64,000 bases of DNA from Klebsormidium nitens (Eukaryota; Plantae; Klebsormidiophyceae): NCBI GenBank assembly GCA_000708835.1, contig DF237072.1, forward strand, positions 62,001-126,000, written 5' to 3'. Shown in pieces: positions 19,197 to 62,099 of the stretch (position 1 is its first letter; the number at the start of each line of letters is the position of its first letter). The translations under genes and the position numbers were made by a program. Below the pieces are notes generated by a model. That model worked only from the letters and a program-made list of their open reading frames with translations. It was not told the DNA's origin and searched no databases.

Positions 19197-22100
19197 ATCC
19201 CTGTTTCAACAGCGCTGCGAAATTGCAGCATGCAACCGGCGGTCCCTTCAACAGATTCTCCTGTCCTTCGAGGATTTCCCTTGCCCTCTGATCAGATTGC
19301 TGACCCTTCTCGGGAGACAGCAGTTAGCTTCGAGTCTCAGCTTTATGAGGCCGAGCCCCCCAAAACCCCGCTTAACCCGGTCTTAACCCAGTCAACCAGT
19401 CCTAGTGGAGGAACTGGTTTGGCTGAACTCAAGGGGTTTCGTTTGGGTGACGTCGACAACCCCCGGGGAACAGCTGTCAGCTTTGCTGCGGGTTATCAGC
19501 CAGGGGCATCAACACCGGAAGTCAAAACCCGCTCAATACTGTCCGACGTCCCTGCACCCCGGCCCCTAAAACCTCCCCCTGACCAGCTCAAAAGACGGGC
19601 CGACGCTGACCCCCCGGTGCTAAAGGGGTTTCGTTTGACACCGGATGAGGCCCACGCCCGCGACGCCGCGCTGAGCTTCTTCAGAGGCAGCTCCCCAGGG
19701 AGTGAAGAACCGTTGCAATCGCCAGCCTCAAACCCTTCCTTCGGGGGGGGCGTTTCCTCCTTTTCTCACCCCCCCGCAAGTCACGCCTCGGCAGTGGCAC
19801 CGAAGCAAGGGGGTGATGTCGAGTCGCCCGTTCTGAGGGGTTTCCGGCTCCCCGACGGGGGCCCTTCCAGCCCCCCCACTAGAGACGCCGCAGTCAGTTT
19901 CGATGGGCCGCAGTCTCCAGCGGTCATTTCACACCGCCCGTTGCTGCGCCCTGTCACAGAAGACCCCCCCTCCGCCCCCGACGTCGGCCTCTGCATCGTT
20001 CTAACTGCCGACAGTTCCCCAAACCCCAGCCTCGGGAACTCCTTCAACAGTCCCAAAACCATAAGCCCTGGAAACACTAGCCCGGCTGGTCGGTCAATCA
20101 TCAGCCGGGGAGAGGGGCTCGGCGGCCTGCCCAAGGGCCGGCTGACGTGGAATGATGTCATCAATGGGGCTTCTGAAGAGAATGCAGGGACGGGCAAGGG
20201 GTTAGGCGAAGCAGGTGCCACTGAAGCGGCAGATGCAGATTGCGGAGAGGAGTCTGATGACGTCAGCGATGGACAAGAGGAACCGGAGGGCGTAGTGTTC
20301 AAGCGGGTTGTGGCGGAGGGGGATGATGTCACCCTAGGTGCGGGGGCGCGCAAGGGCGAAGATGATGACGTCAGCACGGCCGAGGTGGGGTCAACGTCAG
20401 AGAGCCGTATGGGAAGAAATGACGTGAAGCTGACCTTAGATGTCGAAAAGGGAGGTTTCAAAGGAGTGGTTGCATCCGGTCAAAGGATGGGAGCGGAGCA
20501 AGGGCAGGGGATGAAGGGAGGGGGAAGCGACACAAAAGAGGACGGAACGGCACAGCTTCAAGGGAAGTCTGCAGCAGCGTCGGGGAGCCCATCCGGTCCC
20601 GTAGAAAGAAGCGTGGAGTCGCTTGAAGAAGATTGGCACGGGGAAGGGGAGGCTGAAACGGAGGCGGCAAGGGGCAGCGGATCGAGATATAAGGTCACAG
20701 GGAACGCTTGGACCGGGATGGATCTGAACGGAACGGATTGGGGCAGACCGGAACCGACGGGAGTGCAACGGACTACCGGTGGGAAGCGGCCGGACGCGCA
20801 GCCGCAGAAGGAGTGGGCGGACTCCCATGAGGACGTCAACGAGCCGGTCATCTCAGCTGCACGGGCGTTCAGTCCGAAGCAGAAGGCGCCAGTTTTAGGG
20901 TCACCTTTTCGGGCCGAGGGCCTGCGTTCCGGGGGGGATGTGTCGAGGTCACCCAGCTTCGAAAGGCTGCCGAGCTTTTCGGACAGGGAGGGGTCCGAAG
21001 TCGTGTCCGCAGCGAAGGCGTTCAGCCCGAAAGGGGGGGGTAAGACCAGGCTGGGGAGTACGGAAAAGTCGGCCACTCAGGACGAGGAGGAGACGGGGGC
21101 GAAGAACGGGCGGCAGAGTGTCGATGGTCGGGGGCACAACGCGCACGGGTCTGCAGAGTTCGAGCATATTGCTGAACATGTTTCAGCTGCCAGCTTGGAA
21201 GCATCCGGAGATAGTGCTGGAGCTGTGACTTCATCGCGGGTGACGTCAGCGGAGGTTGCCGGTGATGTCAGCGGGGAAACGGGGGGGCAAGGCCACGGGA
21301 GAGAGCCAGGAAGTGGGGTTGTGAAGCCGGGGGCCAAGGGCGGGACGGCCAAAGAGGTGCCAAGCAAGCGGGTGCTCAAGGAAATCGTCTGGGAAGGAAA
21401 CGGGAGCGAAGTTTCGCATGAGGAGGGAAAGGGAGTTCGTGAACCTGTCGCGGCGACTGGAACGGCTCTGCCGGGGAGCGAGCCTGGCTCCAAGCAGAAG
21501 GCGGCCCCTCCAGCAATGGAGCCAAAACCTGCGGTCAAAGAACCCGGTGAAACACCCCGGCCGAAGCCTCGGCGGCGCAAACCAGAGGGGAACGGCCCGG
21601 TTGTTGGCAACCGGGACTCGGGATCACCAGACGGGTTGACTCTTCTCGCTGCTCAGTACGAGGATTCGCCTCCTCGGAAGGTCCCTCCTTCAGAGCCATC
21701 TCAAGCATCTCGGCCTCAGCAAGAACATGTCTTCAGACCAGCGGGAGATGCAGTCAGGGGCGTGGATAGAATTAGAGAAGGGGGGCGGATCTTGAGTCCG
21801 GAAAGCGGCGCCCGTATTCCGAAAACGGTCCACTCGGGCGCAAACCCCCCTGTCAAACGGAGTCAGCCTAAACCCCGGTCAGAAGAAGTCTGGAGCGAGG
21901 ACGGGGGATGGACTGGAAACACTATGGACGCTCCTTCGAGTCCGGACACGCTTCCAACGGGTACGAACTCCCCTAAGAAGCAGACTCAACCGAGGCCCCG
22001 GGTTTTAGAGTCTGCTCCAGGATCCCCACTTAAAGCCGGAGAGTCTCCGAGAGCGCCTCGGAAACCGGCGCCCAAACCCTCAAACTCCGCCAGCGAGCCC

Positions 22101-25100
22101 CCGCCAACGGCTTCCTTGAGCACAGGGGGGCAAACCAAGCAGCAAACCGCACCCCCCCCTGCAAAGCGTCCAGCCAGACCCCCTGGTTCGGAGGACGGAG
22201 CACCCGGTTCAAACAGGCCTGGTCTCGGAGAAATAGGGGGTTTCGAAAACACGGTGACCCTCCGCCCGGTAAAGACCAGTCGCCCCGACTCCAGCGGCCA
22301 AGATATACCCCGTACTCAACCCTTGAGCCCAGCCCCTTCAAGCAGTCCTTCTCATGTGGGTATGTTCCCTGGTTTGAACGCTGCTGCGCGACAATCGGCC
22401 CGAAACACTCCGGACGATTCGGACCATCTCAGAATGCCGGAGCTTTCGGTCAGCCCCCGCGTCGCGCCTGCCAATCGCCCAAAGCCTCACCCCGTCCCCG
22501 GTGCAGGAAGCACTCCCCGGGCTGCGCCACGTGGCAGCCACGTGGCTCCACATCCGCCGCCGTCGGACCCACCCCGGGCTTCGAATGCTGCCCCCGGAAG
22601 CGTGCCACGTGGCAGCCACGTGGTTTCGAACCTCCCTGCAGGTTCTGACACCCCCCGGTCTTGTGACGCTCCGATGACAGACCCGTACCTCCTTTCCGAG
22701 CCCTACAAGCCCAGCACGTTCGGGGCCCCTGCCCGTCCCACTTCGGGGGGGCGCCCGCTCACTGCAGAACGCCCCCCCAGCGCGGACACGGCCAGCCGGT
22801 ACACGTATAGTGAACGGCCAATCAGTGCGGAGCGGTGGGTGGCGCCATCAGAGTCTGAAACCCTAACCCATCCTCCAAACCCGCCTGAGAACCTGCCGGG
22901 CAATCACGCGCGCTCTTTCCCGCCCGAGTTGGCGCACGTCCTTCCATTCCCCTTCTCTGGAGTGCCGCCCATGTTGGGACACGTGGCAGCACCTCACTGG
23001 CCGCTGGCGCTGGGGCCGGACAGTCAGTTTGTTAGGTCGTCGAGTGAGGGTTTTGGTGCAGTAGCCTCGCTTAACCGGAATGGGTTATTCCCCTTCCTGG
23101 ATCCCTACCAACAGCTGCAAGCGCAGTTGATGCAGCAGTACCCCGGGATTAGCTTCCCCCCGCCCGGTTTGGGGAACCCGTACGGAAGCCCGTTGACTAA
23201 ACCCGAAAACCCTCTGCCCGCGCACGCGTATACGCCCAGCCTTTCGCACCTGCCCGCCCCGTCTCAAGAGTTTCCACACCCACAGAGTCAGCCCCAAACC
23301 GGTTTGACCCAAACCCCTTTTGCGCACCTCCAAAGCAACGCACATCCATTTGGTTCGTTCCCTAACCCCGGGCTCCAGTATCCCCCCTTTTCCCACCCCT
23401 ACTTTCCGTATGGCATCCCTCCTCCTTTCTACTCCCCCCCTCCTTCTGTCTTCCCCTTCGCTTCTGCATCCGGGCCACTCAGTCAGGGTTCTGAAGCGGG
23501 GACTTCGCAGGGGGGTCCAATTGCCGGCAGTTTTGTCCCCCCTCCGGAGCCCAGGTCTGCAAGCCGGGAGGGGTTGGACAGGAGCGCGTCTGCCCGAAGC
23601 GAGCTTCTGAAGGCTAGGGACACCGCAATCCAGGTACGTTCTTAAGTTCAAGTGGGTTTCAGCTTCAGGTTCTTCTTGTGCACGTATGATTTCGATTATT
23701 TTGAATCAGAACCGAGACCTTGTAACCTGGTCCGGATGTCTCCCCTTAAACGTTCTCATCTAAGAGTCAGCCGTGTGTCCTTCACCTAATGTTGTGTGAT
23801 CCAATTTCTGTCAGAGGGTTTTGTGGGCGGGTTCTCTAGGTCTCGCCTTCATTCTTGTTCGTTTGTTTGTTAGCATGTGCATCGTACTCTAGGGCTGATC
23901 CTGGTCCTCCGGATGACAAATTTGACGTTCGGAAACATTACTTGGACGCTGCGACATGAGCCGGGGCTGATCAACAGTCTGAGATTAGAAACTCAGGATC
24001 GTGTTACAGACCTTCTTTGCTACGAAAGTTTTGTGGAGCCCTCCTTGCTATTCCTTTTTGCTCACAAGGGCTTGTGTATTCATGCAGAGGGCGCAACAAC
24101 GGGCTTCCAGAAAAGAAGCATTGGTTCCTCCTCAACCTGTGACCAAACCCCCCGAACCAAAGGCACCCCCCCCGCCAGATCTGAACCCTCTGAAACCCGC
24201 AAGTTCGGACCCCACAGGAAGAGCAAGATCCTTAGCAGGCTCCGCACCTCGCAAAACTTCCATAACCCAGAACCCCAAACCCCTGGGTCCTTCAAAAGTG
24301 GTACGGTCCCTAGAGTCGACGTCAGCGAAACAGCAACCACGGGTTGTCGTTGGCTCTGACGTCGTCCCTCCTGTGGCTGCCCCGTCATCCAGACGTCAGC
24401 AAGCGCCTAACCTCCACACCAACCCCCTCACAAACCCTCCCGTCAACCCCTCCACAAACCCTCAGCATAACCGGCTGCCAAACCCGGCTCCAAACCCTCC
24501 TCATATACCGGGGCACCCCCTCCATGCGGCGTCGGAAACCCTCCCCTCATACGACGACTTCCTAGAGTTTCTCCGCTTCCGGTCGGCTCTTGCGGCCCAA
24601 GCACCAGGCGCGCTGACGTCAGCATCCGCGCTCGCCGCCGCCTTCTCTCCTGCTGCCCCCCACCCCGGCTCGCTAATGGAGGGTATGCAAGGGTCAGCTA
24701 ACCCGTTCGGAGGTGCGCTGACGTCAGCAGTCCCGAACGCCCGTCCGCCAGCAGGTCTCCCCGTACTCCCAAGCGGGGCGTCTCGGAAAGCAGCCCAGGC
24801 TGGGCTGCTGACGTCAGCAACGGCTCGGGGGCGCGCCGCCGCTGACCACCAAAAGCTCGCATCGGCCGCTCGCACGATCCAAACGCTATGGCGGGAGCAT
24901 AAGCTGTTGAAGCGGGAGCGGCGCCTCCGGGAGGCCCCCGAGCGGCGGGCCGGGATGCTGCTGACGTGGCGCTTCCGGGCGCGCTTTTTGCACTTGAGAA
25001 GGGTCGCCGTTTTCCTACAGTCCCTCCGCAGGGGAGTGCTCTCGCGCCGGCGCTTCTGGGCGACACGAAAAGCGGTTCGGATCATTCAGAGCGGCTGGAA

Positions 25101-28100
25101 GCTCTTCCGGGCCTCACTCAGCGGATGGCAGCGGGGGAAGCTTAGAGAGTTGCGGGACTTCTATCGTTACGTGAGGGAGAACCTGGAGGTGGTGGGGTTG
25201 GAAGCGCCGTCGTTTCGAAGCTTTGCGCGGCTGATGGAGAGACTGATGGCCGCCACGGAAGGGGCGCGTGTGCGGCGTCGATTGCGGGGCCGGAAGGCGA
25301 TCGCACTTGTCAGTGAGATGCGGGTGAGAGAATTGGCATCTTCCTGACGTTTTCCCTTCTCGTCTTTCCCTTATTTTTTCCCCTTTTTCTTTGTGGGAAT
25401 ATACTCTTGCGCGGCGAAGGCGATGGCATCCGTCAGGGCGAAGCGGGTGAGAGATCTGGCAATCTCTTGCCGTCCTGACAATATTTTGTCTTCTCGTCTT
25501 TCTGTGTCTCGTCCATTCTCTCTTTCCGTTCATGTTTCCCCCTTCCTGCTTCCTGCACTCGTCGTAGCTGCAATTGTTTTCATGACTTCATCACGAGTCT
25601 TGTCTAATTACGAGGATTTGGATCTGGCAGTTCAGCCTTAAACACTTAACTGAAATAGCTGCGTCGTGCGAAAAGTTTCTACGTTCGGGCAGATGCACTC
25701 GTGTCTTACTGAACACAAGTGTCCATATCTCCATCTTCGTGTGCGGAACAGTCGGCTTCGAATGAAATGGTCTATATGAGTACCTTTCTGTTTCTCTTTT
25801 CTGCATGTAAACCGGCTAAGACCAGGGTTCTCAGGTTTCGTCGCAGCTAGACAATCAGGAAAATGCATGCCCCTTGGATACTCTTTCTTCAACTGCACTT
25901 ACTCAGCTGATTCAGTTTATCCGGTCAGTCCAGCAGCACGCTATTTGCCATCCTTTGAGGTTTCCAGTGCTGCCAAAACCTGCGCTTTCCTACAATATGC
26001 AATTCCGTGGCCCTCCAATCCAGTCCAAGGTTGTCAAAGAAGGTCGTGTTTGAACCCGTGTGTGCAGGATATACGGGACCTCTTGCGGCAACTAGAGGTG
26101 GAGAAAGCGCGGGGCGGTGCCACGCCCGACCGCCAGCTGGAAAAGACGCTCCGTGTGCAGCTCCGCCAGAAGCACGTCCTGCTCGAGAGAGCCGCGCACA
26201 CCCCTCTCCTCTCTAGTTCCCCGTCCAATGTGAATACGCCCCTCTCATCCCCGCACCCGAGCTCAGCTGGGTTTGGACGCAACCAAAGGGGATTTGGACG
26301 CAACGGAAGGGGGTTCGGACCGGATCAAAGCGGCTCCGGACGCGATCTAGCGAGAGTCGGACGGACTTCGGTGGAACCCGGGCGGAATTCGGGCGGCTTT
26401 GGACGGAATCCGGAGGGGCTCGGACGCGACCAAAGCGTTCCAGACGCACTGCGCGCGTGGGCGTCCGGATCCGTCGGCGGACATCCAGAAGAGCGGCGCC
26501 GGTCCTTGTTCGAAAACGGCAGCGGCAACGGACGGGCTCCCAGGAGCACTTTCGAGAAAAACGAGGCGCTGGCCGCCGCTTATGCAGAAAACTCCCGCTC
26601 TAGTTTTGCGAGCAGCGCAAACCCTAGCCGCGCCTTTTCACACCAGGGCGGGGCGACGCGAGCACGCGCACCGGTGGCGGAGAGCAACCGGATCTCCTTC
26701 CGGGGGGCTTCGATTGGCTTTGGAAATATACCCCCGGCAGTGGCAACAAGCCGGCCAACGGATCGGACAGGACGTGGACGGGCTTTTGTAGCCGACGAAA
26801 GTGCGGCGGGCATGTTCGGACAGTTTGCCGGGCCCGTGTTTCGGACTTTCGACGAGGGGCTGAGCTTATCTCCGGTCAGGGTGAATTCTCCGCCGGCTAG
26901 AAGCAGGGCTACAACAGCGGAACAGGCGGACGAAAGTCTGCGGGAGACAAGACCTGGCGCGGCGCAGGATGCTACAAAACGGGGCCAAAGGAAAAGCGTT
27001 AGGAGTGACGAGGAGGGTTGGATTGAGTTCGAGGACGTTCCATATGAGTCGGAGTCAGACGGCATGCCAGACGCAGTCGAGTTCAACCGTCATTCACTTC
27101 CGCTGAACGAAGATCGTTTCACGGATAACCGGCCAGGTCCAAGGAGACAGGGAAGGGGAGCCTACGACGTGGAAGACTTGGCTCGGGCCAGTGCGAGCGC
27201 GCACCGCCATCTACCAGCTGACGGGAGCCAAGCGGCTGCCTCCCGGCAAAACGGGTCAAGCGCTAGCCGTGGGACAGCAGTGCGGCTCCCAAACCGGGTT
27301 AGCTATGACGACATCCCGATAACCGCCTCCGCCACGCCGCGCCCCCACCCGGACTTGCACGTGGACGTTCCCAGTCGCTCCAACCCCCCCTCGCAAAACC
27401 CGTCTCCTTCCGAGAATCCCGGAAGGGGTCCCGCCAAGCGCCCGTTCCTACGCGCTCGCTCCGGACGCCTCGGGACGAGCTTCACGATACCGGACCACCT
27501 CAAACTGTCCGTCAACGAGACGCCACGTGGCGCGTCTGGGGACGTGCCAAGTGGCACCACCGGGGACGCGCCAGGTGGCGGCGCCGGCCCTGCTTTAGAT
27601 TCTGCGGAGCTCGGGCCGAGCACTGCGCCAGGAAATCTGGGACGGTCGTTGTTTGCGGACGGGCATAGGGTCAAGAGGAGGGTTAAGCGTAACCCGCTCG
27701 AGGGAGAGATTTCGATCTTGGAGAGAGATGAGGAAGGGGAAGAGAGCGAGGAGCCGCCGAAACGGGCGTTCCTGCAGCGGAAGTCGAAGGCGATGCCAAT
27801 GCAGAAGCTGGATTGGTCGAAGGTAGGTGCCGGGAGTTGAGTTGTGTCTGGTGTGGTTTTGTTGCACAGTTGCTCCCACGGGCAATAAGGTACACGCTCG
27901 CTTGAAAATATGCCTTCAACACGCTGCAAACTTTCTTGTTAGCAACCGGAATATTTTCCCCCAGGAATTGCTTAATGGTGACCCAATAGAGCAGATCAAC
28001 AAAGGTAGGTAGCGGAGTTTGAGAATGGGGCCTGTTGAAGAATGTCCAGCACCTGCAGAGCAATGCGTAGTAACTCGTTTGCAGCCAGCCTCAAACTCGC

Positions 28101-29525
28101 AAGAGTTTCTAACCGCTCTAAGCGTTCTCAAAAGCTCTTCGCTTCTCATTGTCTCCCTGAGACAGGATTGGTTCCTCTTAGTGAAACTCAGGGGGACTTT
28201 CAAACCGATGGTTAGTCTTAACCCTCCCAGGTTAAGCCCCTTGTTGAAGCTCTTCGGATTGTAGGTAGAGTCTTGGATCAGCATGGTTTCTCTCCACCTT
28301 GCAGGTTAAGTCCCTGGTCGAGGCCCGTCTGGACCCTGAAAAGTTTGCCGCCTCGTGTCGCACTGGCGCCTCAAAGAAAGATGAGCCGCCGCCCCTGCCG
28401 GTAGGTCTGTCTTGTCACTTCCTTTCTGAGAGTCCTCTCTTGGCGTCTTTGTCCGGACCGAATTGAACGCTCTGTATACGGTTGTACAGCAAAGGCACTT
28501 CTTCCTTGTACTCATTTTTATAAGAACCCTTGACGACCCTTGACGTTTTATCCAACAACAACCTGTCCAGGCCCCAAGAGCGATTCGTCATTGCTTGTGG
28601 GCAAATTACGAGTGGCTCTCACTCTGGCAATCAGTTGCAAAGCCCGTATCTAATCTGACACTCAGTCGCTGAAGTTTGGATTCAAGGAGTAAGTTTGAGG
28701 CGAAGAAGTAACAAATGTATTCCCGCTTTGTGAAAATTTCAAATAGGCCCTTGGCCATGAGGTCAAACAAGGCAGTCGTATTCAAAGATTGTCAATCGTA
28801 GGACAACTTTTTGAGAACCCGCAGAACGTTTGCTGGTCTTCTTTTTGGACACCTAACAAAATACACCCTGCTTCTTACAGGACTACAAAAACGTGAAGAG
28901 CCGGCTTCTGGCTTATCGTGAGCCCAACAAAAAGTATTCCTCAGTCGAAGAAGAGCCCTCCTTCGAACCAGGCGACCAGGCCCCTTCTCTTAGACTGCCC
29001 ACGTCGCCACGAAGGAAACCGGGTAAGAGCGCAGCGCGAGACCTGAAACGGAGCGGATCGGAGGAGAGCTTCGACGGCGGAAAGCGGAACGGACACGTGG
29101 CAGCCCGTGAGAGGACGGAGAAGGTTGTGAGGAATGGGCGGGGGGGTTTGGAGGGCGCCAGAAAAGAGGCGTGGGTGGCCAGTGACACTGACAGCGAGGG
29201 GCGGTCTCTCGGATCTCAGAACCGGAGACCCCCCCGCAAGGCGGAAAGTCGGAAGAAGCATAAGGGAGACGAGGCGAGCACGCCCCGAAGAACCGGAAGA
29301 GGTGCGGCTGGGCGTTTGCATCAGGAGGGAAGCGAAGAGGAACCCGGAGAGGACGGAGTCGCGAGTCAAGGGGAGCTGTCGTCGACAGGGGAGCTTTTGG
29401 AACGGATGTACCAAAAGTTGCAACGCGATGGGGGGGTGGAGTTCAGCAGTCTGTTCCCCAGGAGGAGAGGGGGGGAGAGCGTCATTCCTAGGCTCAGGGG
29501 TGACGAGGACATGTTCAGCGACCAG
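19197..29525 (+). CDS. Very large (>2700 aa), P/S/G-rich, mostly disordered protein with IQ calmodulin-binding motifs, a coiled coil and two tau-like motifs; both ends unresolved
   Basis: Exons at 19197-23633, 24088-25323, 26068-27822, 28305-28400 and 28881-29525 join in frame through GT-AG introns, all phase 0. IQ-like segments are ARTIQTLWREHK, AVFLQSLRRGVLSRRRF and AVRIIQSGWKLFRA. Possible further small exons at 30071-30113 and 30267-30310 (low confidence); alternatively the last exon reads through to the stop at 29624. The start lies upstream of the acceptor at 19196. Confidence 0.7.
25425..25500 (+). repeat. Decayed intronic copy of the exon end and donor at 25304-25370
   Basis: GCAtccGTCAGgGcGAaGCGG|GTGAGAGAtcTGGCA...CCTGAC...TTCTCGTCTTTC parallels the real junction GCACTTGTCAGTGAGATGCGG|GTGAGAGAATTGGCA...CCTGAC...TTCTCGTCTTTC. 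Confidence 0.85.
26269..26436 (+). repeat. Coding 21-bp / 7-aa repeat, 8 units
   Basis: GFGRNQR GFGRNGR GFGPDQS GSGRDLA RVGRTSV EPGRNSG GFGRNPE GLGRDQS; 168 bp = 8 x 21. Confidence 0.85.
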
Positions 29526-31166
29526 GTGAGCAGATTTGGTGACCTTACTTTGACGGCAGCCTATTTTCAAGTAGCAGAATCTGCTCCCGTATTACCTACT
29601 TTTAGTAGCGTTAGAGAAGACTGACGGCTTTTTGACCTGTCAAGGAGATGGAGTCCCGTGATATCTTCAGTATCGCGGTCTACGAGTTGTAAAACCGGTT
29701 TGAACGTGGAAGCCCGTTGTATCTTTCATGGTCGAATGTCGTCGCTTTCATTACCGACTGCCCTTTCCTTGAGATCGGATCTTGTTTACAATGCTGTTGC
29801 CTTTAGATGCGGAACTTGACAAAGCAGCTTTCCAAGCTGGTTCATACCTCTCTTACTGCTCGGTGGCTGATAAGATCAGGCATGCTTAAATTGGCATCGC
29901 TGTTCCTGCGCAGAGGCAATCGACATTCAGTAATCCATGTAGACCGTTTATGAGGTCAATTTGAAACTTGGATTTGAAAGCTCAAATGCCTCGTGCGTGT
30001 CAACTTCATTCCAATCTTGTTTCAAACGTCCCGCACTTTGAACAGCGGCAACCTCCCCGCTTCTCCACAGCCTGTCGATACCTCGAAACTGCAACGCTTA
30101 CTTTACAGCCCAGGTGACAACATCGTTAGGATAGGCGCTGCTTTTTATTACTGCCGGTCGGCGCTGTCAATTTCGTCTGTCGATCGTTTTCCTAACTTTG
30201 TTTGTCCTTCTCTCCTTCCGAAATCTCCTGCGGTGCTAACTCAGCCACTCGCAACGCATCTTGCAGGGCAACAGCTTGTACAGTCGGCTGACGAGGGAAT
30301 CAGGATTTGACAGGCTCGAGTTGGGCCGTTTGACCTTCGTAGCCGCTTCTGATGGGCTGAAAGAGCGTTGATTGAAGCACCGATGCTTCTCGTGAATATA
30401 GCTGATTCGTCAAGAGTAAACGTGAGATGAGTTGAGAGCATGCTGGTTTTCATGGCAGCGATGAGTGAACCCCTTCAGATTGGGGGACCTACCAATTTGT
30501 GGACGGTCTTTAAAGACTGCAAATATTGTGACTTTGAAACACAGCTTCTGTCGAGAGGGCTTGTAAAATCAGACTTGCTATTCTGATTCAAGGTGGCGCA
30601 AGCGGCGGGCCTACATACTCTTTGGCAGCAAGCTTCACATCACATCCTTTTCAGTTGTGGCCGCGCGATATTGCTTGAATGAAAGTAGTTTGTCCAACAC
30701 TTTTGGACGTATATTGCCAGCCGCAGTCCGCGCGCCGAAACAGCTCCCTTGAATTGACCGTCGAGTGGCAGGTCAAGTGCATAATGCAAATCGAAAGAAT
30801 GGTCACGTGCAGCTATGAACGAATAGATTAGTGTCGATGGTCGCAAAGATGTATGGCGCCTGTGTTTTCCAATGGCTTAATTGGATTTCGTTCGGAAGTT
30901 CATGAGAAAGACTGAGGGGAGACGTCTTCAATCGAAGGCGCTCGAATGACAGAGTGAGGTTAATCACTGATCGATCAGCAATTACTAGCTCGACCTCTTC
31001 CGACATGTGAATTCAGACAGTGCTGATGATGTCGGCCGGCGTTCATGTACGGTTTGAAATTGATCAATCTATCGAAACTATAATATTTTGTGCATTCCGA
31101 TATTGTCCGCAACGTAATTTCAAGTCTACTTCTATGGCATTGACGACTAGCTATCTGTGTCGCTTA

Positions 31167-35300: not shown

Positions 35301-38300
35301 TGCCCCGAGTAGCAGAACCCAAACAGGCCGACGCTGACGGGCAACGTGCCCCAGCGAATCAGCGGACCTCCCTGGGAGAAGCCAATCCCATCGAACTCGC
35401 CGATCCACGCGACGGCGAAGACAACTAGAATGGCGGCTAGCACGCCCGCGGCTGCAAGGAGATGAGAAGGTTGCTGAGAATGCACTCCAGGATTTTCTTT
35501 TTTAGCAGGTTCCAGGAGTCGGGGTGCGTACTGCAAGTACTCAGGGCACATCTTGTGATTATCGGAGTGGTGTTCAGAGTAACGCGCAGCACGTGTCGTC
35601 TTGAGGAAAAAGATTCATTTTACGAACTAGCTTTGGAGGTCAGAGGAGAGCGGGCGAACCAGTCCTGAGACAGAGACAATCCGCGTGTCTTTGGGCACTT
35701 CAGTGCTCGAACATGGCGCTAAGCAATCTCGAAAGGAAGAGGAGGGGGCAGCACATGCGGTGTTTGTGAGAAAAACAAGTGCTCTGTCCGAAAGCGCTAG
35801 AGTTATGCGGGCGTCGGCGTTAATGCCAATGATCTAAAGAACAAGTGTGCCCCTTGGAACCGCAAACATCCTGACACTGTGATTCAAAAGTCGGATCACA
35901 ATAAAGAGTCAACGATCCGAAGCATAAGGGTAAACGAACCCTTGGCTCTGCGTCAATCGATCTGGCTTGTGGTGCTTATTTTCCACCAGTAAGAACTGAA
36001 CACAAAGAACTGAAGATGAGCCGCAGTCAGAAGTAGAAGACGCGCAGAATGAGCACTCTGCCAACGCAAGACGACGAACAGCTCTTGTGACAAGCGAGAG
36101 GTGAAAGGTTTCTTTCTGCACCTTTTAGGGTTTCGGGGATCGCTCAGGCGATCGACAGAAGGCGTCATGTCTGGCCTCACCCGATATGTACGAGAGTAGG
36201 CTGAGGTTTTTCAGCCACACAGTCGGCAACACTGCCAGTGCCGTGAGCAGCATAAAGAAAGTCTTGCTCTCCAGGGGGGCGCCGAAGACTGTGACAGAAG
36301 CCCCCGGGAAGAGCGACGACAGGTTGTCGCCCTCCAGGATAAGAAACTCCACGCAGCAGGCCTGCTCGGCAAAGGACACGTGGCACTCAGTGATTTGCGA
36401 ATCCAGAAAGGGGGACACAGCTAAAGACAGGAGTAAGCGAGCAGATGCTAAAGGATATTGTTGAGAACTGTCAAGAACTCGAGAAGTGGTGAACCTACGA
36501 CTGCGTTTCAACTTTCGCGTTGAATCCATTTCAACAAACTGAAAGCACGTGTAATGCTTGGCATGTTGGAGGCTGTCAAATGAGGCAAGAGACCACCTTT
36601 GTGCGTGCCTTCTTTCGGGGGACTTCATGCAAGTGAATTCCGAACTTCAAGAGATGCGTCTTTGAACATTCACTTCTACCAGACAGCGGGAAGCTACTTA
36701 CATACACTTCGAAGTAAAACAGCGTCTGCACGAGATAAAAGAGGCGCGTTTGTCCACAGTAGTGGGACAGTTTCAGAGATGCGAACTAGGGACTCACGTA
36801 AAGCTCGATGTATAACACTAGCTGCGGTAGACGGTGGGGTGGCAAGGAGGGGAGACAGACACAGGGGAGAAGCAGTGAGCCAAGGTTGTACGACTTGTCT
36901 GCAGCTGTTGCACGCACAGACTGACGGCGACAGGACCACGGTTGAGATAAGAAGAATAAGGCTTGATAAGTGACTTGCCGTGGCTGTCACGATTGCAAAC
37001 ACTCTAGTTGGCTGGAAGCTGCTTCGACTTTGGCTGGGAGCTATTCCGTGAGCAGTAGATGCACAAAGAGCACCGCTATCCACGTGCATTCATTTGAAAA
37101 CGAATCGACCGCGAGCACTCTTCTTCAATGCCTTCGAAAACAGCCCCTCTCACAACGTAACACCAAAGGACGAGCAATACAACAAGCACAAACAGGCACG
37201 CACCAACGGAGCCTGAACATGTATCTAGACTGGCGATGCGAAAAAAAATTCAAGGTTGTGCCTATGCGAGTCATGCTGATACCGAACAGAGGCAACTGAA
37301 TAGAGTTTTAGTTATGCAATGTTCGTGCCCAAAGTTTCGCTTCTTCAGACAATCCGATGATTCTTTTGGTAACCACAAAAGCAGATTTTAGTCGAACGTT
37401 TCCCGCAGCCAACATGCTTGCTCCTCCAATCCCGCGAAAGCCGCCTGATGTACATCGACCCTCGATCAACTGCTCCAAAGAAGGGAGGAAAAGCAAAGGC
37501 AAATGCTTACCGAGATAAGAATCCGGCCCGTCAGGCCAAAGGCGGCTTCCCCGATATCTGGATACGTCTGTACATGGGGGGACGACTGGAGGCAGCGTAT
37601 GAGAAGAACGCCAGTGTAGCAGCAACAGACGGCTAAAAGGAGCAGAACCCCGAGACTGAGCCAGCCCCCCTGAAGGAGACCGTAGGGGGTGGAGAGAATA
37701 CCGACGCCTGCTAGAACGTTCATGCCTGCGGGAAGAGTTAGAGCAGTTTAAGAAAGAGAAAAGAGAAGGCAGGAGAGTGGAAATGTGGGCGCAGATTACG
37801 GCTGGAAGGAGAAAAACGCCGGAACTGAGCCAGCCCCCTTGAAGGAGACCGTAGGGGGTGGACAGAATGCTGACGCCTGCTACAACGTTCATGCCTGTAG
37901 GAAAAGTTGGAAACGGTTTATCTCTAGGGAAAGAAATGTCTGCAGACCGGAAAAGGATCAAATTTCTGGATTTTGGGGAGAGTAGGAGGCCCGACTATGA
38001 CTTGTAGGGCCAGGGCAGGGCAAAAAGGAGCGAGATTTCGAAGGTCAGCAAGTTCGTCCATAGAGGTAAGGCCTCAAAGCACACCAGAGCGCTGCTAGGA
38101 CGTTAACGTGTAACACAAATCAAAACGGGATGGAAAGAAAAAAGCTTTCTTCCTTTCGGACCCAAGCTTTGCAGACCGATAGCGCAGGACGTCGAACTTG
38201 GCAATATTCATGAAAATGAAAGACAGGTGGTGTTTACATTACACCGTGGCCTTTACTCGAGCTTACTCCTCGTGAAATCCTGAGACCCTGGCCGATTTCC

Positions 38301-52788: not shown

Positions 52789-54204
52789 TCAGCATCGAAA
52801 TGAGCAGTCTCTAGGCCACTTGACGTTGACATCTAAGCGAGGGTATTTCTTCTGGAAATTCATGAAGCCCAAGAATAGACGGTCCAAATCTACTACCATA
52901 GCACTTATGATTGGAGCAAACCTAAGCGTTTGCAAATCAATGTGTATGCTCTTTAAACCTGCTGCACTTCTCGTCAATTTGATGATACTTTCGAGCACTC
53001 CTCTTGGGATGTTCTCAAAACCTACCCTCAAATGTTGAAGCTTTGTGAAGGGTGCAAAGAGATGATTATCCTGCTGGAACTTCAGAAGTCCGGTCATGTT
53101 GTGAGGAATGTCTATGCTCTCAAGATGCGGTAATGGAGCAAGCAGTTCTGAAAGCATCATCCTTGGTATAGGAGTCCCCTCATGAGCTGCAAGAGTCGAC
53201 GCCGCTCTCATTGTCAACTCTTTCACGTCAGGGCACAATCTGAAGAGAGTCGTGAGCTGATTAAATGGTTCAAAAGCATAGGCAATATCGAGCACCGAAA
53301 CTTGCCAAGGTGCCACTTTGACGATGTTCCAATCCTCCCCACCGCCAAGTACAAGGTGGTCAAGGCGGGGTGCATCTACTACCAACCTTTCACACACATA
53401 GGCTTCAAGGTACCTCAGCTCTGGAGTCTGCAGTGTCACAGCAGGGATACTGCTTTCTGACGAAATTGAGAGGCGTTGCAGGGTGCTCGACTTGATGACG
53501 GGACTCTCCAGCTGCTCCACTTCTTCTATGACGAGGTTCTCCAAGCTGGGACATGCGCTGAGAATGCTGGTAACGCACGCATCGTTCAAGAACACACACT
53601 GAAGCTCCAGCGTTCTCAACGAGGCCAGCGCGCACCTTGCCGAGAGCGGCTTATACAGGTTTGCTCTACACCGGAGCAATCTCAATACCCTCAGCTTTGG
53701 GCAGGTACAAAGAACTTTGAACAGGATGTGTGTTTGCTCATCGTTTACTTGGCATATGTCTGCTCCGGAAACCTCAAACACCTCCAAGTTGGGCTTCGCC
53801 TGCGGAACCGCCAGCAGAAATGCCAACGACATGTCATTGTCAGCATGTTGTGGAGGCCTGCTGAGACGGATGAACTTCAGTGCTTGATTTTCCTGGAGGA
53901 ATCGAATCGCCCCAGCGCTCATAACTTGGCCAGCATCACGCCACCAAAGTACGTTCTCTACTTGAGGAATAAGGCGATCAAACTGGCGACACACCGCTCG
54001 CAACTGGCATAACTTCTCCAAGGCGGCAGATCTGCAGCCTGATGAATCTTTTTGTATTGCACCATAGTCAGAGTCGAAGCAAGAGATGTCGTCCCGATCA
54101 GCCTGAGCCGCGAGGACTAGGATGCGAAGGATGAGATCGTCCGACAGCCGCTCCAAAGGGCTCGACGGTCCTATACTTGACACACCGGCCCCACTATCCA
54201 TCAT
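52789..54204 (-). CDS. Intronless F-box/LRR (RNI-like) protein, 471 aa
   Basis: Uninterrupted ORF. N-terminal F-box-like LERLSDDLILRIL...LCQLRAVCRQF is followed by LRR-like segments (CPKLRVLRL, LASLRTLEL, CPSLENLVI, TPELRYLE, CPDVKELTM, LPHLESIDI, FTKLQHLRV). Confidence 0.82.
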   Translation of the reverse strand: MMDSGAGVSSIGPSSPLERLSDDLILRILVLAAQADRDDISCFDSDYGAIQKDSSGCRSAALEKLCQLRAVCRQFDRLIPQVENVLWWRDAGQVMSAGAIRFLQENQALKFIRLSRPPQHADNDMSLAFLLAVPQAKPNLEVFEVSGADICQVNDEQTHILFKVLCTCPKLRVLRLLRCRANLYKPLSARCALASLRTLELQCVFLNDACVTSILSACPSLENLVIEEVEQLESPVIKSSTLQRLSISSESSIPAVTLQTPELRYLEAYVCERLVVDAPRLDHLVLGGGEDWNIVKVAPWQVSVLDIAYAFEPFNQLTTLFRLCPDVKELTMRAASTLAAHEGTPIPRMMLSELLAPLPHLESIDIPHNMTGLLKFQQDNHLFAPFTKLQHLRVGFENIPRGVLESIIKLTRSAAGLKSIHIDLQTLRFAPIISAMVVDLDRLFLGFMNFQKKYPRLDVNVKWPRDCSFRC

Positions 54205-54459
54205 GTGGATCCCGCAAAACTATCCCCAACTCTGCCCACTTTGCACACAAGGAAGAACTACGTTCCGGACGCTCACTTGTCTCCCACAAGCTCAGGAAGT
54301 CCTGGTCGTTGCAATGCAGAAGACGGTAGACCATGCAGTGCCAAGTCGTTCATCGGCCAAGCTCTAGCTCTGACTCTGACTCTGAGTATGGCCCGCCTGC
54401 GCTCTACCTGTCAATGTCGGTCGCCAAAAATTTGGCCGGTTTTAGCCTCGGTTTCTCGG

Positions 54460-54495
54460 CGGGCCTGAGTATAAGGGGCCCTATTTAAAATACGA
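54460..54495 (-). promoter_or_regulatory. Candidate core promoter of the F-box/LRR gene
   Basis: TATA-like TTTAAATA on - at about 54482-54489, next to a GGGCCC palindrome and about 280 bp upstream of ATG 54204. Confidence 0.35.
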
Positions 54496-56077
54496 AAGAT
54501 CGAAGGAGCGAAAGAACCGTCGTCTATCAAGCGTCGGGCATAACTGAGCAGCGACCAACTTTTGGGGACGGGTGGAGCGCGGTCGTTGGAACCCGGTCAG
54601 AACCCTGCCAATGTGCGCATGCGGCCGCGACCTGGTATGGACGCGGCGCCGGGTCGGCCGGGCGAGCGGGCTCAGCGGGAAACACGACAATGCAGTGCCG
54701 ACTATAGGGACTTGGAGATCGATACATAAAGGGGCCACTTTTCAAACTTAGCATCGACAGAGGTCCACGTGATGAGACGTCATTTGAAGAAGCCTGCCAC
54801 TCATTCAAGTTGCGGTGCAGCCAGCTGGACTAAAAGCAGCGATTAAGAGTGAAAGAGTATCATACCGGTGATCGGCAGATTCAATGAATCCTGTGCTCAA
54901 TCACCTAGCTGCACTAGACTGTCACACCGCCGAATATAATATAGCGGTTCAGCATTCAAAACAGGGAACACTGAAGGCTCAATATTGCAGGCGCACGCGC
55001 ACGGGATAACGAAACGCCCACAAGCATGCTGCAAGCTCGATCATAATCGTACGCCCCCTATGTATGCATCCGGGCCCGAATCCCGTTGATCCAGGAAACA
55101 TTAACTTATACATGTCCTTTTAAATGGTTATTCAGAAGCTAGAAGTTCAGGACCACCAGTGTTCCAAGCGGCCGAGCTGGATGATGTCTGAGTGGTCACC
55201 AGTCACACGTTTCATGACAATATCTTGCCCGGCATACTTCCGCGCACACCGGAGGATTACCGCGTTAGTGAAACAACTTTCCCGGGAAATTCTCAAAGAA
55301 AATGAATCAATTATGGGCTGCATCGTTTCTGAACGCACCAATCTAATCAATGGACGGCTACCCTACATACCAATCTACATGCACATACTTGCACCCGCGT
55401 TGCAGATCAGACCGTACGTATGCGTGTTCACCTCTTTATTACTAGACAGTTATATTCATGCCAATCGCTGGTGTGACATTCGTTTTTGAAAGCCGCTTCT
55501 CTGGCAACGTAGGAAGAGTGCACTGTCACATCAAAGGCATTAATGCGGACCTAATTGCAAGAACTTTGCCGGGAGTTCAGAAGGGCAGTTGCTTGAAGCT
55601 GCACCGACGTCACATCCACGTACGGCACATATGCACGAACGGCTGATAGCTTTTGGTGCACGATATTGACGCTATTGGTAACCGGAGAGCCTCTCTACCA
55701 TCTCTAGAAGCAGCTCACAGTGGTTCCGGATGCTTCAGGTGGGTTAGCGAAATTCATGACGCATGATGGCCGGAGTGACTCAGACGGCCTGCATGCAGCT
55801 CTCCTCGTACGTATGCACCTCACTGAAAGAAGTCAGTTAAACCATTAGGGAGACAACGAAGGATCGTTTCTTGGACTTCTTCACCCGTTAGTTCTCCAGT
55901 AGGAGCGCATACCAGAAGCCGCAAAAGGAAGAATGAAACGTACACCTAGTTTTCAAGTGCCGTACAATCCTGATCGTCAGTAACTAGATCGTAGTACTTG
56001 AGTATGCCAAACTCCGCGAAGGCTGATGTACTTATCTATGGAGTTAGTTCTTTGGCGTTCGACTGGAAGCATTGCAC

Positions 56078-57131
56078 TTACGTCACAGAAAGAGCCCACT
56101 TCCAAAAATCCTCGACGTCCTGTCTTGGGTCCAAGCAGACCCTCCAACCGGGGCTGTGGGGATTCTCATACTCCAACAGTGCAAAAAGGTGAAACTTATG
56201 GGACTCGCTACCTGGCCGTTTGCGGATCGTGCCGCAGAGACAGAACGCATCTTGCGAGCTTGCAAATTCAGGGGCCGAACGAATCCAGTTTAGCCCGTGC
56301 TGGCCCAGCAGACTGTCAATGGCCCCGCTCGCCTGAAACGTTGCATGCCAAAGTTCTTCAGAGGTGATGCTTCGGTCAAAATCCATTTCGGGTAAGTCAT
56401 CTTTCGTTATACCAGAGGACTTGAGAGCGTGAAATTCCAAGGCCGGCACTCGAGCTCCTGGTTTGAAAAGGTCACTCTCCTCACCAGCTCGCAATTTTGA
56501 GTACTCCCGCAACACTGCTGCTTTTGTTTCGCCAAAAGCAACCAAAGACGCAAGTGGAAAGCTCACGACTTGGCTCAAACTCCGACTCGGGTTCATCGAA
56601 TTTTTCTCCTGCGTTTCTCTTGCGTTCCTACTATCGAGGGTCATAACATCCAAACGCAACGGGGAGATCGTACAACCTGACCAGCATTACTATCTTTCCC
56701 ACCACTGCTAATGTTGAACCAGTTTTAAGCTAGCTAATAAATGGGCCACGGTTCTTTACAGGGTGTGAATCGGAGAGGCCGTGTCCTGGCCGTGTTGTTT
56801 CAAGATGAGACAGTTGATGCGCTCTCTCCTTCATTCTCGCTCTCATCAGACGTATCCTTGTACCCACCCAAAGCCTCTATCTCGTCACGGTTGTCCAGTC
56901 TGTCTTTTACCGCCTCGCAGAACGCTCCGGAGAAGAGCTCAAGTGATTCTTGACCGTCATCGATGATGGCGCAAAACAAGCTGTTCCAAATCTCATCTCA
57001 TGAGTCTGCACCAGTTTCGTAGAAGGCGCGGTAGGCACACATGGCACGTAGCAAAGAGGCAGGGTCTTGCGCCGCAAGTTTGGCCAAGACAATGAGCAGG
57101 ATGTCGCTTGGGAGGTCTTGTAAAGCGCCCA
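56078..57131 (-). pseudogene. Frameshifted pseudogene of the F-box-like family at 57827 and 61083
   Basis: MGALQDLPSDILLIVLAKLAAQDPASLLRA ends at a stop at 56998. Family blocks continue in shifted frames: IWNSLF...EIEALGGYK, RLMRAR, IVMLVRLYDLPVAFGCYDP (followed by stops), and LFALLEYENPHSPGWRVCLD...EDFWKWALSVT. At least three frameshifts are needed to connect them. Confidence 0.8.
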
Positions 57132-57462
57132 TCTCGCTCTGAATTTCAGCTGCAATTGAGCAATCTGGTAAAGTCACAGAAGCAAACCTGTTTACTACGT
57201 CCTGAACTTGGAAAATCAAGAGGCAAACATGAAAGAAAGAGGGCGCGGACGCGATCAAACCGCGTCGCGTCGCGACGGGCCCCACGCGTCGGGACCTGCA
57301 AACCTCGAAATTGCTTCCTTCTTAACTGCAAGTCACGTGCGTCTGCATGAGACTTTACACCTAAAACCAAGCTTTCCTGAGATTGTCCCCTTGTGAACGC
57401 CCTGTGATTTTTTACAAGGAAGCTGGGCCAGAGAGTCGGCAATCGCACCAGTTGAGCGGAGC

Positions 57463-57535
57463 GTCGGACCCTTGTATTTCCGGTGCAAATATGCGCGCAG
57501 CAAGCATATTTGCACCGGAAATACAAGGGTCCGAC
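57463..57535. repeat. Perfect 32-bp inverted repeat with a 9-nt spacer
   Basis: GTCGGACCCTTGTATTTCCGGTGCAAATATGC (57463-57494), spacer GCGCAGCAA, then GCATATTTGCACCGGAAATACAAGGGTCCGAC (57504-57535). Confidence 0.97.
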
Positions 57536-57826
57536 CGTCTCCCTAGCAGATCTGAACAAAAATACTTCGCCAGCTGTAAGACCGCGGCAGCCTGAGACGC
57601 TGCCCTAAACCTCTCAACTAAGCGTCGGCGTCGCGGGCCCCAGGGCGAGCACGCGGCCGGCCAAGTGCGGCCCGCGCGGCCGCCAATCCCCAAAAGGTTG
57701 ATTGGGCGACACGTCGCAGTGATGCTTGGCTTTTCGACAGCGGTATGATTGAACAAAGTCAGGACATCGACGTCACAAACAAGCCCTGACATCAGAATCA
57801 ACTGGAGATCCTTCGTGGCTGCTGAG

Positions 57827-58819
57827 ATGGGGTTGGCGCGTCTGACCTTGGTAGAGCTCCCAAGCGAAATGCTTCTGATCATCCTGAGTAAGCTGGCGCT
57901 CCAAGATCTGCATTCCTTTATGCGGGTCACCAGAACTTGCAAGACCTTTCATGCCAAGGCAGCGCACGATCTGAGTCTCTGGAGGACTGCCTTTCACGCC
58001 CCTTCAGCCGCGGCAAAAGGACTGATCCAGTTTCAAAACGGAAATGCTTGCAAAGAAGAGCTTGCGAGCTTAGACGCGAACGTTGAAGCATTGGGCGGCT
58101 ATAAGCGCTTTGTAGCAGCACGTTGGAGGGATACGGACAGTCCAGAAGTTGAACAAAACGCTTCGAAACAAAGAGCATCAGAACAAAGCCCAGCTCGTTC
58201 GACAGCCCCTGATTCCGGCGTCTGCTCTCGTTCCGAAAAGCCTTCTCAGAAGGGGGTGATAGAAACTGTTCTTATCCTGGTCAGGTTTCATGAAAGCCCT
58301 GTGGCTTTCGGGACTTATGCTCCTTGTACCGACAAAGAACATTTCAAAGTCGACGGACAGTTCTTTTGGCATAGCGACGCGAAACTCCCAAGTAATCTGG
58401 TGTGCATCGATCTTCAGTCGCTGATTCCAATCGCCGAAATGAGAGCGGCAATTGAGCGGGAGGCCTGGAGGGCAGGTCATGACGTCAGCCCGTCACATCA
58501 CTACCTTTTCGCGGGCACCATTCTTTGCACTGAAGTGTACGCTCTCACAAAAAAGAGCGGTAACGAAGGCGGTTCTGAAGTAGGTGAAAATGCGCTTCGG
58601 TATGGAAGATTCTCCATACATAGAGCAGAGGTTAGCAGTCATCCGTGGGGGCTCATTGTCTCTCAGATTGGCAATGTCATCTTCAACGAGAGCAGTTCCG
58701 ACGATGTTTTCTCAAATGCTCGTGAAGACTCTAGGGCTGTCTTGGATTTTGAAACTCCGGGCAGATCGGAGTGGGCATTCTTCATGGCGGGAGATTTGAT
58801 GGGTTTGGAAGAGGACTGA
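57827..58819 (+). CDS. Intronless F-box-like protein of an uncharacterised family, 330 aa
   Basis: First ATG at 57827 within the ORF listed as 57749-58819. N-terminal LVELPSEMLLIILSKLALQD...CKTF...W is F-box-like, and it shares several blocks with 61083-62099. Confidence 0.75.
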   Translation: MGLARLTLVELPSEMLLIILSKLALQDLHSFMRVTRTCKTFHAKAAHDLSLWRTAFHAPSAAAKGLIQFQNGNACKEELASLDANVEALGGYKRFVAARWRDTDSPEVEQNASKQRASEQSPARSTAPDSGVCSRSEKPSQKGVIETVLILVRFHESPVAFGTYAPCTDKEHFKVDGQFFWHSDAKLPSNLVCIDLQSLIPIAEMRAAIEREAWRAGHDVSPSHHYLFAGTILCTEVYALTKKSGNEGGSEVGENALRYGRFSIHRAEVSSHPWGLIVSQIGNVIFNESSSDDVFSNAREDSRAVLDFETPGRSEWAFFMAGDLMGLEED

Positions 58820-58831
58820 GCTACTGATTTG

Positions 58832-58874
58832 GACAGGAATCATATCGACAGGACTCATATCGACAGGAACCATC
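58832..58874 (+). repeat. 15-bp micro-tandem repeat, about 3 copies
   Basis: GACAGGAATCATATC GACAGGACTCATATC GACAGGAACCATC. Confidence 0.9.
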
Positions 58875-61082: not shown

Positions 61083-62099
61083 ATGGCCCGGGCGCCAGGC
61101 TTTCAGGAACTCCCTCACGAGATCCTCTTGCTCATCCTGAACAAGCTTGCTAGTCAGGACACCCTGGCCTTTCTGCGGTCCACTTGGGTCTGCAAGGCTC
61201 TTTACACAGCGGCAGAGGAGATTCCGGGGGTCTGGAAACAACAGTTTAACGCGCCTCTTGGAGCGAAGCTAGAAATGGTTGCGGAATTTCAAAACGGAAA
61301 CTTCTACAAAAGAGAGAGACTTTTTTTGGACGCGACGATAAATGTCATGGGGGGATATAAGCGTCTGTTGGCAGCGCGATGGGAAACGAGGGGCTGTGAA
61401 AGTTCCGAAAAGAATCTTCATGAACAAACGCAAGGGCCAGATAACACCTTTACCGATTGCCCCAGGTGCAGCTTGCAGTCAGCAGAGAACAGTTACGTAT
61501 TGATCCTGGTCAGACTACGCGGAAATTCTGTCGCCTTCGGTGTCTATGATACGCAGAAGAAGCAGGCGTGCTTGAAATTGGGTAAGCATGACGCGTGGGT
61601 TAAAGAAAACGGGTTAGGACCAGTTACGGGCATTCTTCTTCGGCCTTTAGTATCTCGCGAAAAGGTCAAAGCTGAGCTCAGGCGGGAGAACCTGAAAAAC
61701 GCCGCTGGCAAATTTGACCAAGAACTGCTTAGACCTGATCTGGTAAGCGTCGAGTTTTACGCTTTCGGCGAGCCAATCATTTCCAGGAATGGCTCATTCG
61801 CTACACCAGGAATGCTTCGTTACGGAAGCTTTGTAGCGCAGAAAGCTAAGACCAACTGGATCTCGAATCCTTGGTGGCCCTTCGAGTGGTTTAGCTTGGT
61901 TGGCACGGTTTGCCGGCCCCGGTTGTGCCGTCCCGGGCGCGCAGAGGGGAAGAATAGACTGTCAAAAGTGCCTGGTTCAGGAGCCCGGGAACTTTTTGCG
62001 GTGCTGGATTTCGAAACGTGGCAACGGCCTGGCTGGAGGTTCTACTGGGACAAGCTGCATAACCCGGACGCCTTTTGGAAGTGGGCTCGGTTGCTGTGA
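61083..62099 (+). CDS. Intronless F-box-like protein of the same family, 338 aa
   Basis: FQELPHEILLLILNKLASQD...CKAL...W, FQNGN, MGGYKRLLAARW, VLILVR...VAFGVYD, LRYGSF and FAVLDFET...GWRF all align with the 57827 gene. Confidence 0.78.
   Translation: MARAPGFQELPHEILLLILNKLASQDTLAFLRSTWVCKALYTAAEEIPGVWKQQFNAPLGAKLEMVAEFQNGNFYKRERLFLDATINVMGGYKRLLAARWETRGCESSEKNLHEQTQGPDNTFTDCPRCSLQSAENSYVLILVRLRGNSVAFGVYDTQKKQACLKLGKHDAWVKENGLGPVTGILLRPLVSREKVKAELRRENLKNAAGKFDQELLRPDLVSVEFYAFGEPIISRNGSFATPGMLRYGSFVAQKAKTNWISNPWWPFEWFSLVGTVCRPRLCRPGRAEGKNRLSKVPGSGARELFAVLDFETWQRPGWRFYWDKLHNPDAFWKWARLL

Follow-up and report, generated by a model that had tools for sequence, protein, structure and literature searches.

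Proteins of the tau/MAP2/MAP4 family (Pfam PF00418) carry three to five tandem copies of a short microtubule-binding repeat, spaced at 31-32 residues. In a model of tau on the microtubule, residues 256-267 of the first repeat (R1) form an ordered anchor that uses Ser258, Lys259, Ile260, Ser262, Asn265 and Lys267, and Ser262 is described as universally conserved (bioRxiv 10.1101/267153). According to the same model, residues 242-255 of R1, which include P-D-L-K-N, are not ordered on the microtubule, and the second repeat (R2) contacts the lattice through Lys281, Leu282 and Leu284. No clear homologs of this family are known in plants, where COMPANION OF CELLULOSE SYNTHASE 1 (CC1) uses short hydrophobic motifs within a disordered region to bind microtubules, in a manner described as convergent with tau (PMC6382854). 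Here we describe a gene of the streptophyte alga Klebsormidium nitens that encodes two tau-like motifs, each assembled only when an intron is removed. The gene lies in a stretch of 64,000 nucleotides (GenBank assembly GCA_000708835.1, contig DF237072.1, positions 62,001 to 126,000 of the forward strand), which we call the window and number from its first letter. A sequence-only reading of the window had drawn attention to the two motifs and likened them to tau R1 and R2. We show that they form the core of two short linear motifs in tandem, with the pattern D-[WY]-x-x-V-K-[SP], then L or another hydrophobic residue and, further on, [DE]-P-x-K. Judged from the comparisons below, the likeness to tau is analogy or coincidence and not membership of the repeat family.

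The gene is large, running on the plus strand (as do all of its features given below) from about 19.2 kb to 30.4 kb of the window, with approximately 2,746 coding codons. We aligned contigs from four public runs of four studies (X1, X5, X9 and X10) over positions 24700-30600. The runs were guessed to be RNA, and we take the contigs as mRNA because they are spliced with canonical ends in all four studies. Transcript contigs skip 25324-26067, 27823-28304, 28401-28880 and 29526-30266, all four of which have GT..AG ends, and every one of these joints is spanned by single contigs of 4.3-8.9 kb (X5, X9 and X10). The exons that had been proposed from the sequence, 26068-27822, 28305-28400 and 28881 onward, match the contigs exactly; the third, left open-ended at the time, ends at 29525. 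All junctions of the gene are in phase 0, so that translation exon by exon yields both motifs directly. Short contigs of low depth (3-5, versus 27-133 for the spliced contigs) also cover parts of the four introns, at 25393-26079, 27795-28260, 28469-28909 and 29534-30104 (X1, X5, X9 or X10). These could be unspliced RNA or DNA carry-over, and contig depth cannot rank the two.

Across their junctions, motif 1 reads K-L-D-W-S-K | V-K-S-L-V and motif 2 reads P-P-P-L-P | D-Y-K-N-V-K-S-R-L, just as the sequence-only reading had it. Motif 1 begins at the end of a 585-codon exon (26068-27822; first half of the motif at 27799-27822) and is split by a GT-AG intron of 482 nt (27823-28304), the joint of which is present in four runs. 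Its second half (28305-28346) opens a 32-codon exon (28305-28400), in which a variable linker is followed by K-K-[DE]-E-P-P-P-L-P leading into motif 2 (28383-28400). A GT-AG intron of 480 nt (28401-28880) parts this proline-rich lead-in from the 15-codon core of motif 2 (28881-28925), which begins a 215-codon exon (28881-29525). The two motifs start 36 residues apart. The roughly 2,746 residues contain just two V-K-S sites, each of them preceded by D-[WY]-x-x, while D-[WYF]-x-x-V-K-S is expected by chance at 0.0013 sites per protein; the motif pair is therefore beyond chance within this gene. The residues that extend each motif after V-K-S are also loosely alike in both copies (L, a hydrophobic residue, A, then [DE]-P-x-K), a weakly significant similarity reached by 98 of 2000 shuffles.

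Both motifs belong to a conserved island that spans 27607 to 28925 and is broken by a variable 10-residue linker. The first part of this island (27607-27822) is nearly invariant among five taxa and contains a K-R-R-V-K-R sequence resembling a nuclear localization signal (NLS; 27673-27690), an acidic run, a second K-R-x-F-L basic motif and the first half of motif 1. Each motif of the pair is preceded by proline-rich and basic residues, and this C-terminal island is disordered and net basic: its three pieces have net charges of +5, +1 and +4, and the whole protein, rich in Pro, Ser, Ala, Gly and Arg, has a net charge of +51. The basic unit before motif 1, P-x-K-R-x-F-L-x3-S (27754-27795), is repeated about 108 residues upstream, ahead of P-D-H-L-K-L-S, with a score that 4 of 2000 shuffles reach. 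This upstream unit (27436-27510), a K-R-P-F-L basic motif followed by I-P-D-H-L-K-L-S, is invariant in the orthologs, and its latter part (27487-27510) may be a degenerate third copy. A literature text search for the K-R-P-F-L type of basic motif returned nothing relevant.

We compared the gene with its relatives. A phmmer search with exon 28881-29525 against 1.84 billion representatives returned a single match, a Klebsormidium-like open reading frame (ORF) fragment, whose contig, together with three more from a word search, gave four related loci. One (L004) is a close relative, and the other three (L001, L005 and L006) group together at a greater distance, with 44-45% overall identity to the 585-codon exon. 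Both intron positions fall at the same codons in every related locus that reaches them. Motif 1 and its intron are kept in all four loci, and motif 2 is kept in L001, L005 and L006, the L004 contig ending before it. Motif 2 is invariant in those three loci save for K/R at codon 3 and E/D at codon 14. The last coding exon (30267-30371; 34 codons and a TGA stop; joint 29525|30267 in four runs) likewise has an orthologous exon in L001, L005 and L006. Lack of conservation in orthologs had been named beforehand as a finding that would speak against the motifs; as far as the contigs reach, they are kept in the related loci.

The kept motifs carry many synonymous changes. We estimated the ratio of nonsynonymous to synonymous differences (pN/pS, simple Nei-Gojobori) against three relatives and obtained 0.11-0.14 in the island, against 0.60-0.63 over the remainder of the two exons, with pS at 0.55-0.68. 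A low ratio in the island at this level of pS means that the conservation reflects selection on the protein and not low divergence. These data show that the island is the best-conserved part of a fast-evolving disordered protein and is under strong purifying selection, whereas the protein is for the most part drifting. AlphaFold2 predicted no secondary structure for the last 150 residues of exon 26068-27822 from a five-taxon alignment (mean predicted local distance difference test, pLDDT, 58; highest, 71-75, over the last 20 residues). For exon 28881-29525, mean pLDDT was 53, with a low-confidence helix at residues 3-10, in motif 2, and a better one at residues 168-182. The island pN/pS of about 0.12 and these disordered models fit the earlier picture of short constrained motifs in a huge disordered protein.

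Relatives were also sought more widely. Word-index searches with the 585-residue exon, with the island region alone and with the L005 N-terminal ORF covered proteins of 0.55-1.75 times the query length and recovered nothing beyond the same four to five ORF fragments. Conserved peptides were back-translated for two metagenome scans, neither of which detected a relative, and sequence searches of the PDB, with exon 28881-29525 or a five-taxon island profile as query, gave nothing relevant. The ESM Atlas returned only low-score noise, at 0.78, for exon 28881-29525. The apparent absence of relatives beyond the genus is provisional because long annotated proteins lie outside the length range of the word searches. 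This alga's own full-length protein (19230-30371) was not returned by either protein collection, which yielded only exon-sized ORF fragments from related contigs; the full-length model is either absent from the collections or outside the search length limits.

We next consider how far the likeness to tau extends. As comparison peptides we took an R1 14-mer and an R2 10-mer from the four human tau repeats printed in PMC4703892, with which the R1 and R2 sequences given in the sequence-only reading agree, and scores across junctions were summed piecewise by exon. Motif 2 shares 9 of 14 residues with R1 (54 raw, 27.7 bits), and motif 1 shares 6 of 10 with R2 (27 raw, 15.3 bits). None of 5000 shuffles of the protein's residues reached a score of 54, and a Gumbel fit gave approximately 1e-5 per protein for that fixed peptide. 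The motif 1 match has an E-value of about 0.36 locally, and it is not independent of the motif 2 match because the repeats resemble each other on both sides. In both motifs the likeness is to the front half of the repeat (hydrophobic-D-hydrophobic-x-x-V-x-S-basic-hydrophobic), in the form [KP]-[LP]-D-hydrophobic-x-x-V-x-S, then a basic and a hydrophobic residue; by chance such a match is expected about 4.8 times per proteome, and the serine of motif 1 is Pro in three orthologs. In the R1 anchor, the equivalents of Ser258, Lys259 and Ile260 are kept. Motif 1 has equivalents of the R2 lattice contacts Lys281, Leu282 and Leu284, with Leu in place of the basic residue after the serine. The algal protein also resembles the tau family in being disordered and basic with short motifs in tandem.

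Several observations weigh against a tau-like reading of the motifs. When any register of the 120-residue repeat domain is allowed, ungapped, the motif 2 match has an E-value of about 0.0015 for this protein and of about 4.8 per proteome of 8.5 million residues; the finding arose from a genome-wide read, so the likeness alone is no argument for homology. About half of the matched letters are outside the known tau contact, since residues 242-255 are not ordered on the microtubule. Beyond V-K-S, the rest of the anchor is absent: both motifs have Ala four residues past the serine, in place of the Ser262 of KxGS, and neither is followed by the invariant Asn (Asn265), by an equivalent of Lys267 or by a PGGG end. 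The V-K-S serine of motif 1 (codon 3 of exon 28305-28400) is Pro in three of five orthologs (L001, L005 and L006), the only position at which that motif varies. A tandem array of at least three copies at a period of 31-32 residues is absent, as there are two clear copies at 36. No relative was seen beyond Klebsormidium-type algae by phmmer, the length-limited word searches, the metagenome scans or PDB. In hmmscan, every exon piece and the motif 2-bearing ortholog pieces gave no PF00418 row at E-values up to 10. Finally, the island also has patterns that suit other ligands, namely NLS-like, proline-rich and aromatic-x-x-Val ones.

The Pfam scan was run exon by exon, and all residues after each V-K-S lie within a single exon, so the discriminating half of the repeat, which carries most of the signal of the hidden Markov model (HMM), was covered. 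Given no PF00418 match over that half, and without KxGS, the invariant Asn or PGGG, we reject membership of the tau/MAP2/MAP4 family. The two proteins also differ in layout, the alga having an R2-like copy followed by an R1-like copy, on an unrelated giant of about 2,746 residues. Of the original proposal, then, the gene model, the motifs and the remark that KxGS and PGGG are missing all hold, while the suggested PF00418 scoring, the anchor beyond V-K-S-K-I, the motif 1 serine, and the copy number and spacing do not bear out a tau repeat. Taken together, the motif pair is a real, well-conserved feature of an orphan gene, and its likeness to tau appears suggestive but statistically unremarkable and incomplete. 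The protein could still behave like tau without belonging to the family.

A true, very old homology, in which the motifs are remnants of a tau/MAP2-type repeat from an early eukaryote, would account for two neighbouring segments that match an R2-type and an R1-type repeat over its front half. A non-animal case is on record: the fungus Rhizopus delemar is reported to have tau-like microtubule-binding domains (PMC4815063). However, nothing of the C-terminal half that defines the family is present here, no HMM match was obtained and the searched collections contained no intermediates; the match itself is within chance genome-wide, and no clear homologs of the family are known in plants (PMC6382854). 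We consider such descent extremely improbable.

The basic clusters of the island suggest another explanation, that they are nuclear-import signals of a nuclear scaffold in which the tau-like letters are incidental. Two segments are candidates, K-R-R-V-K-R (27673-27690) and K-R-x-F-L-x-R-K-S-K, which immediately precedes motif 1. All five taxa share K-R-R-x-K-R, a sequence that by eye matches the classical monopartite pattern; the K-R-x-F-L unit is present in two copies, and the island is net basic. Import signals would nevertheless leave the invariant aromatic, Val and Leu positions and the basic-poor 15-codon motif 2 unexplained, and we regard this explanation as unlikely. It would be compatible with a spindle role, as importin-regulated spindle factors exist.

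The lead-in to motif 2 raises the possibility that P-P-P-L-P-D-Y is a ligand of the L-P-x-Y or PPLP kind for a WW, SH3 or similar domain and serves to recruit a partner that acts in signalling or as a ubiquitin ligase. Both L-P-x-Y and PPLP are recognized classes of ligand for WW domains, and E-P-P-P-L-P and D-Y are invariant across the intron in all orthologs. Such a ligand accounts neither for the invariant N-V-K-S-R-L-L-A-Y-R nor for motif 1, which has no proline lead-in, and we know of no Nedd4-type WW ligases in the green lineage. A proline ligand is a quite improbable explanation.

The variable part of exon 26068-27822 contains two acidic islands, I-E-F-E-D-V-P-Y (27022-27045) and R-V-S-Y-D-D-I-P-I (27295-27321), each with a minimal [FY]-x-x-[VI] core resembling an ATG8-interacting motif or LC3-interacting region (AIM/LIR). 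The D-[WY]-x-x-V cores of the tau-like motifs might themselves be of this type, which would make the protein a selective-autophagy receptor or substrate. Four sites (both motifs, F-E-D-V and Y-D-D-I) fit [WFY]-x-x-[LIV] with a preceding acidic residue and are conserved in relatives. Yet this core is extremely common, and known AIMs favour acidic or hydrophobic residues at the x positions, which in the tau-like motifs are Ser/Lys and Lys/Asn. We therefore find an ATG8 ligand very doubtful.

Two other candidates were rejected. A putative resemblance between motif 2 and the charged helical domain at the NuSAP C-terminus has no Pfam support, and the letters do not fit a D-box or a 14-3-3 site.

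Our best reading is that the gene encodes an expressed orphan scaffold protein, present, as far as searched, only in Klebsormidium-type streptophyte algae. The conserved island would act as an unfolded docking module. By analogy, the single most likely guess for its ligand, and a tentative one, is the microtubule lattice or tubulin, because the kept residues open tau's anchor, the region is basic and unfolded, and CC1 provides a precedent in the green lineage. Binding would be weak, multivalent and extended, through the aromatic, Val and Leu side chains and the flanking Lys and Arg, as in tau/MAP2 repeats and CC1. The CC1 N-terminus of Arabidopsis, with its spaced hydrophobic motifs and critical aromatics and no PGGG repeats (PMC6382854), represents the mode that we propose for the alga. 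CC1 differs in being a small membrane protein of the cellulose synthase complex, and we saw no sequence similarity between the two; microtubule binding has been shown for CC1 and is a proposal for the algal protein. A role at microtubules, basal bodies or the spindle, as originally suggested, may follow from such docking. A more specific version would have the motifs as a tau/MAP2-type half-repeat (a V-K-S-basic-hydrophobic anchor with D-aromatic ahead of it), independently evolved or retained from a very old ancestor, that docks at tau's inter-dimer protofilament site on a giant scaffold regulated by Ca2+/calmodulin; we think this improbable. The remaining probability falls to partners that cannot be named.

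Calmodulin enters this proposal through an IQ-like site at 25000-25056, which alone fits [FILV]Q-x3-[RK]G-x3-[RK]-x2-[FILVWY] in full and is flanked by two degenerate IQ-like sites. It lies in a very basic exon (24088-25323; isoelectric point 12) with an IQ-like helical region, the 3' junction of which is confirmed by the RNA contigs. Ca2+/calmodulin could bind at this helix, approximately 900 residues upstream of the island. The description of the gene product as an IQ-motif protein stands in so far as the consensus is matched and is kept in L004, L005 and L006; Pfam IQ (PF00612) scores only 6.7 bits there (E-value 9.7), below its cut-off of 20.3. The nearest protein-language-model Atlas clusters all carry PF00612 (score 0.89), which we treat as a lead only. 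Plant IQD scaffolds are basic, largely disordered, microtubule-associated proteins with calmodulin-binding IQ motifs. The algal protein resembles them in being basic and largely disordered with an IQ-type site; it differs in being several times larger and in having no IQ67 or DUF4005 Pfam row on any exon piece. Across all exon and ortholog pieces, Pfam returned no PF00418, NUSAP, ALMS, DUF4005 or IQ67, the sub-threshold IQ being the sole row.

The rest of the protein is built as follows. The first coding exon (19230-23633; 1,468 codons) is inferred from its open frame and first ATG, has the donor GTACGT after 23633 and encodes a disordered, mildly acidic N-terminal region. The 5' junction that joins it to the basic exon (23633|24088) is outside read coverage and is based on its GT-AG context and on the acceptor being kept in L004. 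Between 19250 and 19950, this exon contains three to four copies of S-P-V-L-[KR]-G-F-R-L, followed 8-14 residues on by R-[DE]-A-A-V-S-F, and these are kept in L005 and L006. To our knowledge, no known motif has the form S-P-V-L-[KR]-G-F-R-L ... A-V-S-F. A second sequence, S-A-A-[KR]-A-F-S-P-K, is duplicated at 20853-20882 and 21006-21035, 51 residues apart, with both copies kept in L004 and one in L006. The 585-codon exon has a short coiled-coil-like start and a long variable disordered stretch before its conserved islands, and the 215-codon exon is mostly disordered, with more conserved islands and the helix predicted at residues 168-182.

The neighbourhood of the gene was also inspected. The relatives have a Sel1-repeat gene on the downstream side, in the opposite orientation (L002 5953-6357, L006 17757-19121). 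In the window, the ORF at 36128-36628 (minus strand) has a weak amino-acid-transporter match instead of Sel1-repeat. Further along is a cluster of F-box and F-box-associated leucine-rich repeat genes (52789-62099), with ORFs at 52792-54204 (minus strand), 57749-58816 (plus strand) and 61083-62096 (plus strand).

What the gene means for the biology of these algae depends on whether the island binds microtubules. If it does not, the protein would be an ordinary lineage-restricted disordered protein with well-conserved docking motifs, and it would serve mainly as a caution, since a proteome can be expected to hold several ten-letter matches to a well-known motif. If it does, a core of five to seven residues of the tau repeat would be enough, and within the reach of evolution, and the alga would offer a naturally occurring minimal form in which to study how such repeats hold tubulin. 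If the half-repeat reading were true, the green lineage would have its first tau-like microtubule anchor at the level of sequence, and the island would define the minimal anchor of the repeat. Microtubule binding would also mean that the algae closest to land plants have at their disposal a large microtubule scaffold linked to Ca2+/calmodulin.

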